A stretch of 64,000 nucleotides of DNA from Hyaloraphidium curvatum SAG 235-1 (GCA_025558095.1 JAIVFI010000005.1:682001-746000); one strand, 5' to 3'. Positions 7,801 through 62,855 are shown, numbered from the stretch's first letter. Notes: generated from the sequence alone by a model not told the origin. Numbers and translations: made by a program.

Positions 7801-8338
7801 CTTTGATGCCCTATTCTTCAACGACGGCTGGAGGTCCGGCATCCAGCACGTGCTCAACGACTTTGCCCACGGCGTCGCCCTGCTCCAGAAGTTCCTCAGT
7901 TCGACATACCTTGATCACGAGGAAAAAACCCGCGTCGCGGACCGCATCAGGATGGGGCTCGCCGCGGCGGCCGCCGACGTCGCACGCAACGCCAACGCCG
8001 GGTACCGCCGCCTGATCGACGAGCTCAGGATGCTCCCCGTCGGGCCGGACGGCGTGCAGGCGGTCGCCACGCTCGGCCGGTTCGGCGTCGACGCGGGGAT
8101 CGGCGCGTTCCCAGGGTACCACGCCATCGACCAGATGGCAGCCCAAGGGGAGGCACCCGTGGTCCTCGCTTCGGCCGGGCCGTCGTTCAGGGATGCACCG
8201 GCGATGCCCGATTTCGCGCCGTTCCAGATGCAGCCGCCGGCCCAGGACCTGCAGGCAGGATGGAACGGCATGCCTGCCTACCCGCCCGCCCGCGGGCAGT
8301 ACAACCAGTCCGCCGACCCGGACGCCCTCCAGCTTTGA
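4812..8338 (+). CDS. JSN1: RRM + Pumilio-repeat RNA-binding protein (Jsn1/Puf1/Puf2-like), multi-exon
   Basis: Two RRMs (PTRSLWIGNL..CAFVNF; PTKSVWIGNL..KNCGFVNF) followed by PUF repeats (DYIGNVVLQK, HKNGTWLAQK, DQVGNYVVQQC, DRYGARCMR). GT-AG introns at 6510-6565, ~7014-7070, ~7238-7292 and ~7710-7763. Confidence 0.9.
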
Positions 8339-56649: not shown

Positions 56650-59600
56650 ATGAGTTCCCATACCAGACGACAACGTTTGCCCTTCCCGCACGGGGCCGAT
56701 GGGTGAGGTCCGCACGCGTGCCACGTGCCCGTGAGGGCGCAGCGTCGTCCTACGCCGCTTAGCGGTCAGGTTCCAGATGGGCAAAGAGTCCCGGCGTTGG
56801 CACAAAATCCGGCCGCCGCGTGGAATGAAAAAGGATGCCGGATCTATTCGCACATCGCCAAGGACGAGCTCGGCCTCGAGTTCAGGAAGAACACAACCTC
56901 GGACAAGGAGATTGCCGACAAGGACAAGTCGCTTTACCTGCACCGCAGCATCCTGCGACTCGCGCCCTTCGCCTCGTGGGCCCCGCGAGCGCCCGTGGAG
57001 AAAGGTTCCGCTCTCGGAATCCCGGAGGAGCTGGACCTCGCTACCTATTTCCGCCCGGCACCACCCGTCGACGAGGGCAACGCCGTCGGGGACGCGGAGC
57101 CGCCGCCGGCTACGGCTTCCACGACCGCGGAGCTCAAGTTCACGGCGGAGCCGTTGACGCCGGCGCTGAGGCAGGAGTACCTCGACGCGACGCGCAATGG
57201 ACACCTCGCGCAGGCCATGCTGGGAGTGCTGTCGGCGATGGAGGCGGCTGCCGGGCTCGGCGGCAACGAGTTCATGACGCGCGTTGAGGCGGTGTACCGG
57301 ACGACAACGATCGGGGGTCTGGAGCCGCGGCACGGGAACCCGGCCGACGCCGGTGGCCGCTGGGTCTACGGGGACCTGTCCGAGATCGTGGACCCGCGGC
57401 TGCCGACGACCGAGATCTGCGCCAACTGCCCCAAGGGCGACGTGGTGCTGGGCTCCCGCCGCTACTTCCTTAACGCGACCAACAGGATCTTCTTCACCGC
57501 CCTCGACACCACCGCTTTGGACCGGCTTCGAGGTCTGCTGGCCGAGACGACGGTGGGCTCGCCTCCGCCATGGACGCGCTCATGTCTGATCCGCGCACGG
57601 CCGTGTCGCAGGACGAGGCGACCAAGACGGCCATCGGCAACGACATCGCCGTCATTGAGTTCGAGCTGCATTTTGCACGCCCGCGACACGCAGCCCGCCG
57701 ACTTTGACGATCAGCACTGGCCCAAGGCGACTCGCGCCCGCGCCCGCGTGATGGGCAACCTGGTCTTCACGGACGCTGGCAAAACCTGCCCCCTCCTATT
57801 CGTGGGCATCGTGCGCACACTGCCTCTGATGCGTTTCCTGACAGCCCTTTTGCGCCCAGATCGACGGCGACGATGATTGTTGCTGTTGCGACAGCATGTC
57901 TAAGATGATGGGAGGCGGCGAGTGGGATGCCGACGTCGCCAAGCGAGCTCTGCTCCTTCACCGCCGCATCCAGCTCGAGCACCTTCGGCTGGAACTCGCA
58001 GCATTCCGCCCGACCTTGGTCATCGGCTTGGGGTCAAACATGGCCCGGATGCTGTGCTCCACGAGCGGGAGCCCTCACCTGCCCAAGCGCTCCCTTCCGT
58101 TTGCGACCGGCGGCATCCTCAACGTGGAATTCAACGTGCGCGGCTCCGATCCCGCAACCGCCTTCCAGCTCGCGGTCGCGCCGCACCCTGTGGCATGCGC
58201 AATGCTGCCCTCCCACCTGGCCGACTCGGTCACCGCCCTCTGCCTCCTCCCGAACCCTGCCAAGGCGGAGGCCGGAGCGGTGTTCGACCCGTCGTCGTAC
58301 TCGGCGGTCGCCGCGCTGGACGCCGCGTCTCGGCTCGCGGCGCGCACTATCGTCCCTGAGGTCTTCACTTTCTGGCCCGAGCGGGGCACCGAGGGCGTCA
58401 CCCACCTGGAGTCGCTCCCCGCGGCTCACCAACGGATCCCTGAGTCGTTCATACCCAGCTGGCTGATATCGAGCTGCGCCAACCTCTTCACGTCGGGCTT
58501 CAAGGAAAAGTTCAAGGACCGGTTCCAGGCCTACCTTGAGATCTTCGCTGCGAATGGCCTCCGCGACCTCGCCTTCGGGAAGTCCCGCACGTACCTGGAT
58601 CGGGCCACCCGCGCGCGGATTGGGCAAGATGCGCCCGCACCGCCGGCAGGCCTCCTGGGCGCGCTGGCCTACCGGCTGCGGTGTCTGCTGGTCCCGCGGT
58701 CCGGTCAGGCGGCGTCTGCTGCGGTCGCCGAGGATGGGGATGAGGTTGCCGTGCTGCTCGAGGACGACGGGCAGGACGCGGTGGCGCTGACGCCGCGAGA
58801 GAGCGTCGCCGCCATCTACGGCCTGAAGCCGCAGGTTGCGGATATCGTCAAGGATCTGGATGGCCTCGGGCGGCATTTTCTGGAACGTTCGTCGGACAGG
58901 ACGCGCGCCAGCACCCAGTCCCTCCTGGATGCCGCGCGCGACCTTCTCTTTGGAGCTCCGGGCGGTGCCGCGCGCCTCCGTCCGATCGCCGACATCCGCC
59001 GCGACGCCGGGCTCGGCGAGGTCGCGTTGACGGACCTGAAGCTCGACGATAAGCTGGGATTTGTCCGGAGCGCTGTCGTGGCTGGGGACCTGAACCAGCG
59101 GCTCACGCCGAGGCTCCATGCGGGCGATCGCTTCTCCAACCTGGACAACGCGGTGTTTGGGAAGTGGCTTGCAGCGTACGTCGGCTTCCTGCTGCGCCAA
59201 GACGAGGGCGGGAAGGACGAGTTCGGTGCTTCCGTGTCGTTTGGCCTGGCGGACTCCCTGGACCACTGCAGGATCCCTGGGGCGGCAGACGGTAGGGTTC
59301 TGGCCAAGGTCAAGAAATGTCTCCGGGACCAGGATCCCGGCGTGAAACTCGAAGGAGGCGACGTGTCCACCCTCCTCCGCAACTATGCCTTGCCAGGCGC
59401 CGTGGCGCTTGGCGCCGGCTCTCCCCGAGATCGACTTCATCGTGAATCGAGCAACTACATCGCGTCGAACGGTGTCGCCACCAGGGTGCTCTTTGAGCAC
59501 CCGCATCATACCAAGGGCTTCAACCGGCTGGGTGGGGCGCGCAGCGCAGTCAAGGTAATGGCATGCTCGCAGCCAAGTTGATGGTCCGCTGACGGTCGAC

Positions 59601-61526
59601 CCACCTTCCTCGCAGCCGGGTCACGGTGATCTGCCTCAAGATGCCAAGTGGGTGGCTAGTTGCGTCGGGTGCCAAGGAGGAAGGGGCTGCGATCGCAAGT
59701 ATCCGAGATGCGGGTGAGCTTTGCCCCAGTCAATTGGTGCTCATTTCCTCCTAATCCTTAACTATCTACTCACCCGTAGCGCCTGCACCAACGCGAATCG
59801 GCAGTGCATCTACAAGATGCCTGTGTGCGAGTGCTGCAACAAGGCGCGTCGCGTCTGCGACGGCAGAATGCCCTCGTGCGGGTAGGTTTCCGTTGTTGAC
59901 ACCTCCTCGCACCTCGTGTTGCTGACTGACACGCTTTCGAACATCAGGCAGTGCACGTATGCAGGGGACACCTGCTCGTGGGAGTTCTTGACAGCCAAAG
60001 GAAGGCGGAAGGCCGGCGACGCCGAGGACTTTGAATGGATCTCCCACGCGCACCACCGCACCATCCCCGAGCTCGCCGGCTGGCACGTTCCCGGCGCCGG
60101 CGCCTCGTCGACGCACGCCTTCATGCGTGGCGTGGTGCTCGAGGGCGAACTCTGCACCAGCTCGGATCCCGGCCCCCGGAACGGCGTCTTTTTCCAGAAG
60201 ATGAAGCAGGGCGAGAAGGACGTCGTCTATTACTTCGACCACAAGCCGAGCGTCGAGACGGCCACCGACGTCGCCTACAACATCGTCGCGGCCTCGGTCG
60301 ACCCGGGTGCCAAGGGCGACACGATTTCGGTCACGGCCTTTGCTGTGGGGAAGGACGGCAAGCTCGAGGAGCTGACGCTCCACCGCTTGTTCCGGCCGCT
60401 GTCGTCGAAAGGGTACAGGGCGAAGGACGAGGCGGCGCGGCCCGACGAGTGGTGGACGGAGCACGAGGACCTGTCGACGCTGATGGCCGAGGTGTCGAAG
60501 TCGCCGTACCCCGTCGACGGCATGCTCGCAGGTGGGCATTGACGAAGCTGCTCTGGCTCGTGGTCGCTCACCCGCTCCTATATTCGCCGATCCGCCTCGC
60601 AGCGTCTGCGTTCCTCAACCACGCCGGCTCGCTCCTCGACCACGCGCAGAGCCGCCACGCCCAGCTCGCCAAGGAGTACCGCTTCCGCGAGAACCAGGCC
60701 CGCCAGGCGGCCATGAAGAACTGGATTCTCGCGGCCGGGGAAGCGGTGTGGCGCCAAAAGGTCTACCTGGAGGCCTTCAACGCCCACGTGGAGAAGGAGC
60801 GGCCGAAGCTCGGCGAGCCGCCGCCTGACCGCGACCACGCGCGCAAGATCGAGGAGGGTGCGCACGCAGCGGGCAGGGACGCGGTGGCGGCGATCGAACG
60901 GATCCCCAACCCCATCGTCCTGTGCGGTGCCGGCCAGGGCACGGGCTCCCGCATGCCGTACGTCGGCAGCATCGCCGATTCTCGCGGCCGGGGAAGCGGT
61001 GTGGCGCCAAAAGGTCTACCTGGAGGCCTTCAACGCCCACGTGGAGAAGGAGCGGCCGAAGCTCGGCGAGCCGCCGCCTGACCGCGACCACGCGCGCAAG
61101 ATCGAGGAGGGTGCGCACGCAGCGGGCAGGGACGCGGTGGCGGCGATCGAACGGATCCCCAACCCCATCGTCCTGTGCGGTGCCGGCCAGGGCACGGGCT
61201 CCCGCATGCCGTACGTCGGCAGCATCGCCGAGTTCCTCTCCCGCCACTTTCTCGTCTTCTTGCTGGGCGAGTACTTTACCTCCCAGCTGTGCCCGACCTG
61301 CCTCGCCAAGCTCGAGCCCAACCCGCTCAAGCGCGGCGACGTCGTGCACAAGCGCTGTGCGACCTGCAAGCGCAACCCCGACCGCGACGGCTTCGACGGC
61401 GAGCTGGTTCTCAACAAGAACCGCTCCGCCACCCTCTGCCTCGTCAGGATCTTCCTTCACATCGTCGCCACTGGCGACCGGCCCGCAGTCTTCACCCATC
61501 GGGCCGCCTCTCGCAACGCCGGATAA
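56650..61526 (+). pseudogene. Fanzor1 (TnpB family) fusion: UDG-like domain + 2x Zn2Cys6 + RuvC; 8 exons, ~1396 aa when repaired
   Basis: Exons 56650-56702 (tentative), 56763-57552, 57612-57810, 57860-59554, 59616-59713, 59780-59881, 59948-60531, 60603-61526. RuvC-I AASVDPG (D at 60300), RuvC-II GEYFTSQLCPTC (E at 61269), second CxxC, RuvC-III NKNRSA, terminal GDRPAVF. Disrupted by a +1 at ~57671-57674 and a 253-bp duplication. Confidence 0.85.
60724..61229. repeat. 253-bp tandem duplication inside the last Fanzor exon
   Basis: Units start at 60724 and 60977 with GA microhomology; the length is not a multiple of 3. Confidence 0.95.
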
Positions 61527-61673
61527 ACCTACCCGGCACTTATCTGAATGAGTGAGTCTCGCGCCCATAGATGGGGTATCAGGGTGTTGCGAGTTTTTGA
61601 TGGGGGCGGTTAACTGACGGAAAGCACGCCCCCCTCCCCCTTCTTCCTCCCCCGAAGCCATGACATCCGAATG
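61527..61673 (+). ncRNA. Putative Fanzor omegaRNA (scaffold to 61653, guide from the flank)
   Basis: Lies between the Fanzor stop and the element right end. Stems CTCGC/GCGAG enclosing CCCAT-AG-ATGGG, and GGGGGCG(61602-61608)/CGCCCCC(61627-61633). Confidence 0.55.
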
Positions 61674-61682
61674 AGAAGAGGT

Positions 61683-62855
61683 TTATTGGACCCCAAACCG
61701 GCCCATAAGCCGCTGGAAAAGCCCGCCGCTCTTCTTCTTTGGTTCCGCTTTCTCCGCATTCCCACTGTCCTCCTCAACCTCCTTTTTGGCCTTTGGAGAC
61801 GCCGGTGCCGGCTTCGCGGCGGTCGGGCCTACAGCCCGGGCCTTCACGGCCTCGATCAGCTCCAGTCCCTTCTGCTGCCGTGCCAGCATCTCCTCCAGCA
61901 GAGCTCGCTTGTTATCCCCGGCCTGCACTTCGCCCGTGGCCAGGTACGTCGTCCAATCGTCCCACGAGATGCGCGCTTTCCACGCCAGGTCGTACTTTCC
62001 CCGTTCGATGATGCTACGAAGGTCGTCGTCCGAGATCGACGCATCCAGCCTCGCGTAGGCTTCCAGCTTGGCCTTGATGTCGTCCATCGCCTCCTTCCGC
62101 GCGGCAACCTCGCGCGAGATTTCCCACTCGGCCCAGTCGACCCGGGTCTGGTCCGCCTTCCGCTTGTCCTCCAAGGCGTGCTCCAACCGCGTCACCAGCC
62201 GCTCCAAAAAGCGCTCCCGCGTCGACAGCTTCGCTTCCTCCTTCTTTTTGAGGTACCGCGCGTACCAGTCCGGCTCCTTCTTCTGCTGCGAGGCAAGGAG
62301 CCGCAGCCGCACCAGCTCCAGTTCCCGCCGGACCTTGGGCAGGAACTCCAGGGCAAACAGGCTGTGCGTGTCCGTCGGCGAGTCCACGAGCTCGATCAGG
62401 GCGCGCTCGCCCTGGTCGCGCTGCCGGTAGCCCGCGAGGGTGACGCGGGCAAAGTTCTTCTTGCGGTCGCGGTAGCGGAACCGCAGCTCCCCGAGCAGCT
62501 TGGGGACCACGGTCTCTTGTTGCTGCAGGATGGCCGCGGCGCGATGCGCCCGTGAGCAGGATTCCGGCGCCGATCGCGGCGGGCACCCACGTAGACCTTG
62601 TAGCGGAGCGCCCACCGCGCGTAGTCCGTATCGCGCTTCGCCAGCGCGATGGCCTGCCGCCACATGAGCCGTATTAGGGACATCGAGGCGCGCGGCCGGC
62701 GTTCCCACCTTCTCGGCCACCTTCTGGACCTCGCGCGCCTTTGCGTTTGTCGTGATTATCTGCTCGTGCACGACGAGCTGGCCGAGCAGCGTCCGCAGCA
62801 GGTCGCGGCGGTGCAGCGCCGTGCGGCCGAGCTTCCGCATTCGCTGCATCGGCAT
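61683..62855 (-). CDS. MRPL17: Mitochondrial ribosomal protein bL17m with long C-terminal extension (2 introns)
   Basis: RKLGRTALHRRDLLRTL..LVVHEQIITT.AKAREV...AEK/AIALAKR...PKLLGEL..RY..R...ALIELVD. Confidence 0.93.
   Translation of the reverse strand: MPMQRMRKLGRTALHRRDLLRTLLGQLVVHEQIITTNAKAREVQKVAEKVGTPAARLDVPNTAHVAAGHRAGEARYGLRAVGAPLQGLRGCPPRSAPESCSRAHRAAAILQQQETVVPKLLGELRFRYRDRKKNFARVTLAGYRQRDQGERALIELVDSPTDTHSLFALEFLPKVRRELELVRLRLLASQQKKEPDWYARYLKKKEEAKLSTRERFLERLVTRLEHALEDKRKADQTRVDWAEWEISREVAARKEAMDDIKAKLEAYARLDASISDDDLRSIIERGKYDLAWKARISWDDWTTYLATGEVQAGDNKRALLEEMLARQQKGLELIEAVKARAVGPTAAKPAPASPKAKKEVEEDSGNAEKAEPKKKSGGLFQRLMGRFGVQ

Follow-up and report, generated by a model that had tools for sequence, protein, structure and literature searches.

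Within a 64,000-nt stretch of contig C5 of Hyaloraphidium curvatum (JAIVFI010000005.1:682001-746000; the whole stretch is called the window below, and positions are counted from its first letter), the + strand at ~56.7-61.5 kb holds a locus that an earlier note, made from the sequence alone, had read as one complete gene fusing a UDG-like domain, tandem zinc clusters and a Fanzor nuclease. Our analysis indicates that 56836-61640 is very probably a 5'-truncated, frame-broken copy of a low-copy unit of 12-13.4 kb that carries a giant Fanzor-fusion gene. An intact unit would hold one long spliced gene of ~2,450-2,800 codons, and its predicted product would comprise an N-terminal and middle region without recognisable family, two Zn2Cys6 clusters and then a Fanzor/TnpB module with a RuvC-I Asp, a RuvC-II Glu, a C4 zinc ribbon and an atypical RuvC-III. 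The locus in the window is a relic, and its annotation as a complete gene or as a glycosylase is unwarranted.

Relatives of the locus were sought in the whole genome assembly (G000; 31.9 Mb in 55 contigs). C14, C8 (two) and C31 carry full-length or longer copies, and C5 (that of the window), C17 and C15 carry partial ones; all are colinear. The C14 copy is the intact sister of that in the window, and those on C8 and C31 are paralogues. The window copy is 92-97% identical to C14:247701-252247 (blastn, and MAFFT alignment against L019; 91-92% in the genome comparison), while the two C8 copies and the C31 copy are relatives at ~38% amino-acid identity. The window and C14 copies become similar abruptly at 56836 and cease to be so near 61640, and it is exactly at 56836 that a C14-derived transcript contig departs from the window. 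On C14, the reading frame continues more than 700 codons 5' of the equivalent of 56836, within an open segment of 1,026 codons (~720 further codons of the same exon), and additional upstream exons are conserved among the C14, C8 and C31 copies. The abrupt start of similarity and the frame running on upstream in C14 mean that the window copy is 5'-truncated, which leaves a gene start at 56650 and a seventh intron without support. What had been taken for a complete gene of ~1396 aa is instead a fragment, ~1,353 codons' worth of a gene for a protein of 2,450-2,800 aa. At the level of the whole unit, C8:319067-332501 and C31:147040-133551 are 91-95.6% identical over 13.4 kb, and the similarity has sharp ends. 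In each of the three partial copies (C5, C17 and C15) the 3' end is retained and the 5' end is missing. Since these truncated copies still have all their introns, their 5' truncation cannot be due to retrotransposition of a spliced mRNA.

Transcript evidence came from one public run (X1), typed ‘RNA?’, which is a guess; its contigs behave like a transcriptome. They were placed on 56650-61650, and joint positions are given after cut-shift correction, with the ends checked. Six GT..AG skips were seen in these contigs, all on the + strand: intron A (57553-57611, 59 nt), intron B (57802-57859, 58 nt), intron C (59555-59615, 61 nt, in two contigs), intron D (59714-59779, 66 nt, phase 2), intron E (59882-59947, 66 nt, phase 2) and intron F (60532-60602, 71 nt, phase 1). 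The joints chain a first retained exon piece in frame 1, to which no function is assigned (56836-57552), with exon 2 (57612-57801), a large exon of 565 codons (57860-59554), two micro-exons (59616-59713 and 59780-59881), the RuvC-I exon (59948-60531) and the last coding exon (60603-61526, stop 61524-61526). As the contigs are short, each junction is proven individually and not as part of one full transcript. Six of the seven canonical introns of the earlier note thus have RNA joints, while the seventh does not; both of its hidden micro-exons are real, and its + strand open reading frame (ORF) pieces are present (56725-57876, 57896-59581, 59721-59885, 59916-60542, 60035-61081 and 60858-61526). 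Contigs without a mismatch over 283-387 nt of the window copy occur side by side with contigs differing by ~8%, so the window copy and its sister both appear to be transcribed.

When the six introns are transferred to the C14 copy, where all are again GT..AG, they leave 2,073 open codons from L019:1538 to the stop at 8136, with no internal stop and no leftover base, for which we estimate a chance probability of ~1e-23. This intact chain and the RNA joints uphold the proposal of one spliced frame that joins the middle region, two Zn2Cys6 clusters and a Fanzor/TnpB-type RuvC-TNB module. In the window copy the same six-intron chain fails twice, in exon 2 and in the last exon. Exon 2 lacks 2 nt near 57669-57673 relative to C14 and runs into a stop after 31 codons; at this place one RNA contig has two extra letters and the remainder do not, so that both forms are present in RNA. 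The earlier note had repaired the frame here by removing an extra T: there is indeed a frame defect, its nature is a 2-bp deletion relative to the sister copy, and removal of a T restores the same frame. The last exon is interrupted by a perfect tandem duplication of 2 x 253 nt (60724-61229, with 60724-60976 identical to 60977-61229), which that note had also recognised and which is missing from the C14 copy. It shifts the frame by +1 and leads to a stop at 61081, before RuvC-II, and as a result the window copy cannot make the RuvC-II/TNB/RuvC-III part. With at least 1,100 first codons missing, a shift in exon 2 and a further shift before RuvC-II, it cannot yield an intact protein; it is a pseudogene fragment that is still transcribed.

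The ratio of non-synonymous to synonymous substitution rates (dN/dS) between the window and C14 copies is 0.17-0.21 at a dS of 0.17-0.27 across three exons (0.21 for the first retained piece, 0.17 for the large exon), which implies that the source lineage was under purifying selection for most of the divergence. The lesions of the window copy are probably recent. At 60605-60976, compared with L019 7468-7839, dS is only 0.023; this stretch includes the duplicated 253 nt and suggests a recent exchange or gene conversion between the two copies.

It could be argued that the truncated copy is a working, domesticated gene for a shortened protein, its frame defects being assembly errors or tolerated, and this we hold to be very unlikely. 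Exact-match contigs show that the window copy is transcribed, and its dN/dS of ~0.2 against C14 is not the ~0.5 expected with one always-neutral branch, although an equally low value is expected for a recent copy of an active lineage that is now unrepresented. NCBI also annotates a protein here: a homologous-protein search with the 573-aa exon gave one match, the hypothetical protein DFJ74DRAFT_474603 (P0001, 661 aa), whose residues 18-582 match the 565 codons of the large exon in the window without a difference. However, this model is out of frame after micro-exon 1, the 2-bp deletion is found in RNA contigs as well as in the assembly, and the duplication takes RuvC-II, TNB and RuvC-III out of frame.

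An exhaustive search of 1.84 billion representative proteins, made with a hidden Markov model of the large-exon alignment, returned only P0001, P0002 and P0003, together with one spurious bacterial Ig protein. P0002 (1,772 aa) is the C31 copy and P0003 (2,449 aa) the second C8 copy, the latter an NCBI model that already spans the whole protein through the Fanzor-like end. As far as the searched databases show, the middle region appears to be confined to Hyaloraphidium curvatum.

Part of this middle region was the basis for the glycosylase claim. The putative UDG-like region (57724-58262) spans intron B and has real conserved motifs, namely LLF-IDGD(D/E)-CCCC-D, LVIGLG.N and APHP..PSHLADS.TA; the large exon carries DGDDD-CCCC, LVIGLG..N and APHP..PSHLADS along with the region that the earlier note called REC-like. 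UDG motif A (GQDPY/GEAPG type) is absent, its site reading LLF-IDGDDD-CCCC, and a motif-B-like APHP..PSH (cf. the HPSP type) is conserved. With PF03167, neither the exon proteins nor P0003:1150-1560 gave a match at E<=1-10, and a six-frame scan of the genome at E<=10 found the true UDG of this organism at C20:148610 and none of these loci. A PDB profile search with the region (A5) gave chance rows only. The AlphaFold2 model of the region has a mean predicted local distance difference test score (pLDDT) of 44, and Foldseek against the PDB returned nothing at E<=0.001, TDG appearing at E 0.22 with a root-mean-square deviation of 16 A. One UDG cluster did appear among the ESM Atlas neighbours (rank 8, score 0.90), which by the calibration of that tool is a lead only. 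A UDG-type fold for this region is accordingly something we would call unlikely though by no means negligible, and the chance that the region acts as a glycosylase is much lower.

The reading to which this domain belonged, in which 56650-61526 is a complete gene joining a UDG-like glycosylase, zinc clusters and Fanzor into an RNA-guided base-excision or regulatory effector, is extremely unlikely. Its splicing, Zn2Cys6 and RuvC parts are real, the strands and helices around LLF..DGD / LVIGLG / APHP..PSH have a loose likeness to motifs A and B of UDG, and the ESM Atlas lead points the same way; on the other hand, sister similarity begins at 56836, the true frame runs on far upstream in the intact copies, the window copy is frame-broken twice, and Pfam, the PDB profile search and Foldseek were all negative for the glycosylase. 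With the glycosylase unsupported and the gene wrongly delimited, there is no evidence for a programmable base-excision effector.

Within the large exon, the motif D-G-D-(D/E)-C-C-C-C-D, with four consecutive cysteines (window 57860-57900), is shared by four out of five aligned copies; in the second C8 copy it takes the variant form DDCCCDDCC. We know of no family with this signature.

The tandem Zn2Cys6 clusters of the earlier note, in contrast to its glycosylase, hold up well. They lie at 59661-59975 (59661-59807 and 59826-59975), ~100 residues before RuvC-I, and are assembled across three exons: micro-exon 1 encodes Cys 1-4 of cluster 1, micro-exon 2 its Cys 5-6 and Cys 1-4 of cluster 2, and the exon from 59948 on the remainder. 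The spacings in the window are CX2CX5CX6CX2CX6C and CX2CX6CX6CX2CX6C, against a canonical Zn(II)2Cys6 spacing of CX2CX6CX5-12CX2CX6-8C, so that cluster 1 has X5 in place of the canonical X6. Pfam gave no zinc-cluster match on single window exons, and in the C8 paralogue (P0003:1960-2080) PF00172 matches two stretches above its cut-off (E 7.7e-6, 26.4 bits against 21). Each cluster is interrupted after its fourth Cys (‘...C-G|x-C...’) by a phase-2 intron, a repeated layout which suggests that the pair arose by exon duplication.

To judge from its sequence, the last ~400 residues are a divergent Fanzor/TnpB module, a reading on which a motif, a profile match, the nearest ESM Atlas neighbours and invariant catalytic-type residues agree. 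The elements of the Fanzor layout named in the earlier note (SVDPG, KEYRFRENQARQ, IVLCG, GEYFTSQLCPTC, CATC and G.RP..F) are all present. In the window, the RuvC-I Asp codon lies at 60300-60302 within SVDPG, and the last exon carries the RuvC-II Glu (61269-61271), CPTC (61290-61301), CATC (61356-61367) and RD (61383-61388). The published Fanzor/TnpB motif is D-X(125,275)-[TS][TS]-X-X-[C4 zinc finger]-X(5,50)-RD (Bao & Jurka, 2013; PMC3627910), and the C14 copy matches it as D(VDPG)-X217-TSQL-CPTC..CATC-X5-RD. The same residues occur in the window copy, but the duplication sets them in different frames; the C8 and C31 paralogues have SDK where the window and C14 copies have RD. No copy departs from the RuvC-I Asp or the RuvC-II Glu. 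By hhalign, a family profile of the C-terminal 410 residues (A4) matched an alignment of several PF07282-positive Fanzor families from the same genome at a probability of 88.1% (E 3.1e-6, score 52.7), compared with 1.8% for a reversed template and <=0.1% for five column shuffles; with a single sequence in place of that alignment, the probability was 40.7%. The match takes in the IVLCG strand, GE.TSQ.C, both pairs of CxxC and the G.RP..F tail. In the ESM Atlas, the clusters closest to this C-terminus (score 0.96, 178-182 shared features) are from eukaryotes and giant viruses, and all ten of the ten best family-bearing neighbours carry PF07282.

That this C-terminus might instead be an unrelated zinc-ribbon protein with chance motif matches is scarcely credible, since the lack of any significant Pfam, NCBIfam or PDB sequence match, of a usable structure and of any hit in the homologous-protein search is set against the ordered D-X217-TS-xx-CxxC..CxxC-X5-RD motif, the G.RP..F tail common to the canonical Fanzors of this genome, an hhalign probability of 88% where controls reach <=2%, and PF07282 in every one of the ten neighbours. 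The searches in question covered four pieces of P0003 (NCBIfam) and P0003:2040-2449 (homologous proteins); a homologous-protein search with the ORF of the canonical Fanzor L035 likewise found no match, for which its low-complexity head is the probable cause. The canonical Fanzors of the genome, for example L035:1180-2979 on the - strand, do pass PF07282 and touch the TnpB models of NCBIfam.

Further Fanzor families are present in the genome, at C2:397473-398345, C2:426577-427461, C5:336026-336172 and more than ten near-identical loci (including C3:632898, C6:426117 and C7:383875). At least two of these families are multi-copy with identical matches, and some pass PF07282 and have a canonical NRDxNSARN RuvC-III.

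Several points weigh against the interpretation of the locus as a relic of a mobile Fanzor-fusion unit. PF07282 (Cas12f1-like TNB) scores 17.1, 16.7 and 14.1 bits, all below the gathering cut-off of 26.3, the best value being that for the last window piece (E 0.006). The (R/N)-D-x-N-A-A of Fanzor RuvC-III reads N-(R/V)-S-A-T in every copy, with Asn at the usual place of the third catalytic Asp. A 10-11-residue insertion lies between this motif and the Asp that follows the second CxxC, and DRD at the canonical spacing after that CxxC is limited to the window/C14 lineage; rearrangements of RuvC-III and inactivations of a comparable kind have been described among prokaryotic TnpBs (PMC10691335). 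AlphaFold2 modelled the C-terminal 410 residues with a mean pLDDT of 38, Foldseek against the PDB gave nothing at E<=0.001, and a PDB profile search with the last exon (A1) returned chance rows only; the order of secondary-structure elements is compatible with a RuvC fold with an inserted zinc ribbon, and no more. A single full-length transcript was not observed among the short X1 contigs. The 253-bp duplication is taken from the assembly, in which an error is possible, and unitigs collapse exact repeats. Mobility of the unit is inferred from its sharp-ended copies; the C8 and C31 boundaries showed neither terminal inverted repeats nor target duplications, and no empty site or transposase was seen.

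The 3' end of the unit, where any guide RNA would be expected, was compared at window 61527-61660, L019 8137-8270 and L020 7900-8010. Here ~115 nt after the stop codon are conserved between lineages with 38-58% amino-acid identity (61527-61640 in the window, in an alignment of seven copies). A 5-bp GCCGG/CCGGC stem enclosing the stop codon (window 61513-61545) is invariant in all seven copies, among them lineages of only ~40-58% protein identity, and because it never varies it shows no covariation. RNAalifold on the seven 3' ends found mostly invariant helices, with a covariation term of +1.16 and no support for a structured RNA, and Rfam had no match on three loci. A GTGAGT donor stands at 61552, 25 nt past the stop; a branch-like TTAACTGAC follows at 61610-61618, with CTGAC or CCAAC among the copies, and then a pyrimidine tract runs to the end of the element, where sister-copy similarity stops. 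A C14 transcript is spliced from the terminal donor to an AG in the flank (a loose end at 61551 continues as C14 flank sequence). It follows that the unit ends inside an intron whose acceptor AG lies 4-20 nt into the flanking DNA. No shared 3' flank motif was seen among the copies.

As to function, the intact protein may work as an element-encoded RNA-guided DNA-binding or DNA-cutting module, in which the zinc clusters would make additional, sequence-specific contacts to DNA, and its large N-terminal part may supply the DNA processing that in ordinary Fanzor elements falls to a separate transposase. The layout of the 3' end allows a more specific proposal, in which the element would provide donor, branch point and pyrimidine tract, the first AG of the flank would act as acceptor, and the conserved 3' scaffold, together with 4-20 nt of flank, would be contained in the excised intron. 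A guide RNA derived in this way from the excised terminal intron is speculation. Copies that retain the 3' end and lose the 5' end would in turn reflect copying initiated at the 3' end. Taken together, the picture of intact members as autonomous mobile elements, in which the giant protein processes DNA and is aimed by its Fanzor module with a guide RNA from the terminal intron and with copying from the 3' end, seems to us unlikely.

In the N-terminus of the intact copies, which lies outside the window, motifs resembling XPG/FEN1 can be read by eye (YVDGPVVL, V.EADGH, SSDRDLLYM and SVL.SGSHNT) at L025 6368-7595 (C14:244368-245595), or residues 190-560 of P0003. A six-frame scan with PF00867 matched six other loci and none of this family's, and the N-terminus had no Pfam match at E<=10 and chance rows only in a PDB profile search (A6). 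An XPG/FEN-like N-terminus is at this stage an impression from the motifs. Further upstream, 2-3 kb 5' of the first conserved coding exon, there is a non-coding block that is ~75% identical between lineages of ~38% amino-acid identity (L025 2900-3250, or C14:240900-241250, and L026 1200-1550). It contains a GTG(A/G)GT...GGCTGAC pair and is probably a conserved exon of the 5' untranslated region with its intron. The DNA is ~65% G+C at the window locus, and tblastx without a score filter is uninformative in DNA of such composition.

Two observations concern the flanks of the window copy. Over 56650-56983 the contigs are about twice as deep as within the element and have loose ends at 56695 and 56796, which suggests an exon of another transcript directly 5' of the truncation point. 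Downstream, a convergent ORF of 390 aa occupies 61683-62855 on the - strand; its N-terminal sequence presumably resembles that of mitochondrial ribosomal protein L17. Its stop lies ~45 nt past the end of the element, so that transcripts reading through the element end would be antisense to it.

Those Fanzors that have been described are compact, at ~400-800 residues, and are passengers of ordinary transposons. The present family joins a Fanzor-type module, transcribed and under purifying selection, with two transcription factor-type zinc clusters and ~2,000 more residues in one polypeptide, carried by a unit without a recognisable transposase. A literature search found no paper that pairs Fanzor with Hyaloraphidium and none on a fusion of Fanzor with zinc clusters, with a glycosylase or with XPG, in agreement with the earlier note, which knew of no such architecture among described OMEGA systems; fusions are not mentioned by Bao & Jurka (PMC3627910). 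If intact copies are active, it would become testable how a eukaryotic RNA-guided module combines with protein-based DNA recognition, whether such an element can move without a classical transposase, and how a guide RNA is produced from a spliced polymerase II transcript.

Three known systems invite comparison. Like GAL4-type Zn(II)2Cys6 factors (PF00172), the family has six-Cys clusters with GAL4-type spacing, two in number and above the Pfam cut-off in the paralogue. They differ in being internal, tandem and set within a nuclease-type protein, in which no dimerisation coiled coil or fungal transcription factor middle homology region was detected.

Among prokaryotes, TnpBs have been exapted or rearranged, giving clades with a rearranged RuvC-III and inactivated TnpBs linked to other proteins (PMC10691335). 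The family shares with such derivatives a TnpB-type scaffold with an atypical RuvC-III, combined with other modules. Those derivatives are mostly separate genes of an operon, whereas here the modules are predicted to form one eukaryotic polypeptide; and the RuvC-I Asp and RuvC-II Glu are still invariant here, so that inactivation would not be an established feature of this family.

The closest parallel is Fanzor1, a group of eukaryotic TnpB-like endonucleases guided by omegaRNA, as exemplified by SPu-1-1p/SpuFz1 of the chytrid Spizellomyces punctatus (633 aa; PMC3627910). The proteins of the present family are 4-5x larger, with an N-terminal extension of ~2,000 residues that belong to no known family and two Zn2Cys6 clusters inserted before RuvC-I, and they are encoded by an intron-rich gene. 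Their RuvC-III reads N-R-S-A-T instead of D-x-N-A-A and carries the 10-11-residue insertion, and the unit ends in the pyrimidine tract of an intron, with no inverted repeats, target duplications or partner transposase seen. What the family has in common with Fanzor1 is the C-terminal order of a RuvC-I D, ~217 residues, a [TS][TS]-x-x-C4 zinc ribbon and RD, and, with the canonical Fanzors of its own genome, the G.RP..F tail. As with Fanzor1 elements, these are multi-copy DNA units in an early-diverging fungus, and they too have conserved non-coding DNA from the stop codon to the unit's end, which is where the guide RNAs of Fanzor and TnpB are normally encoded.

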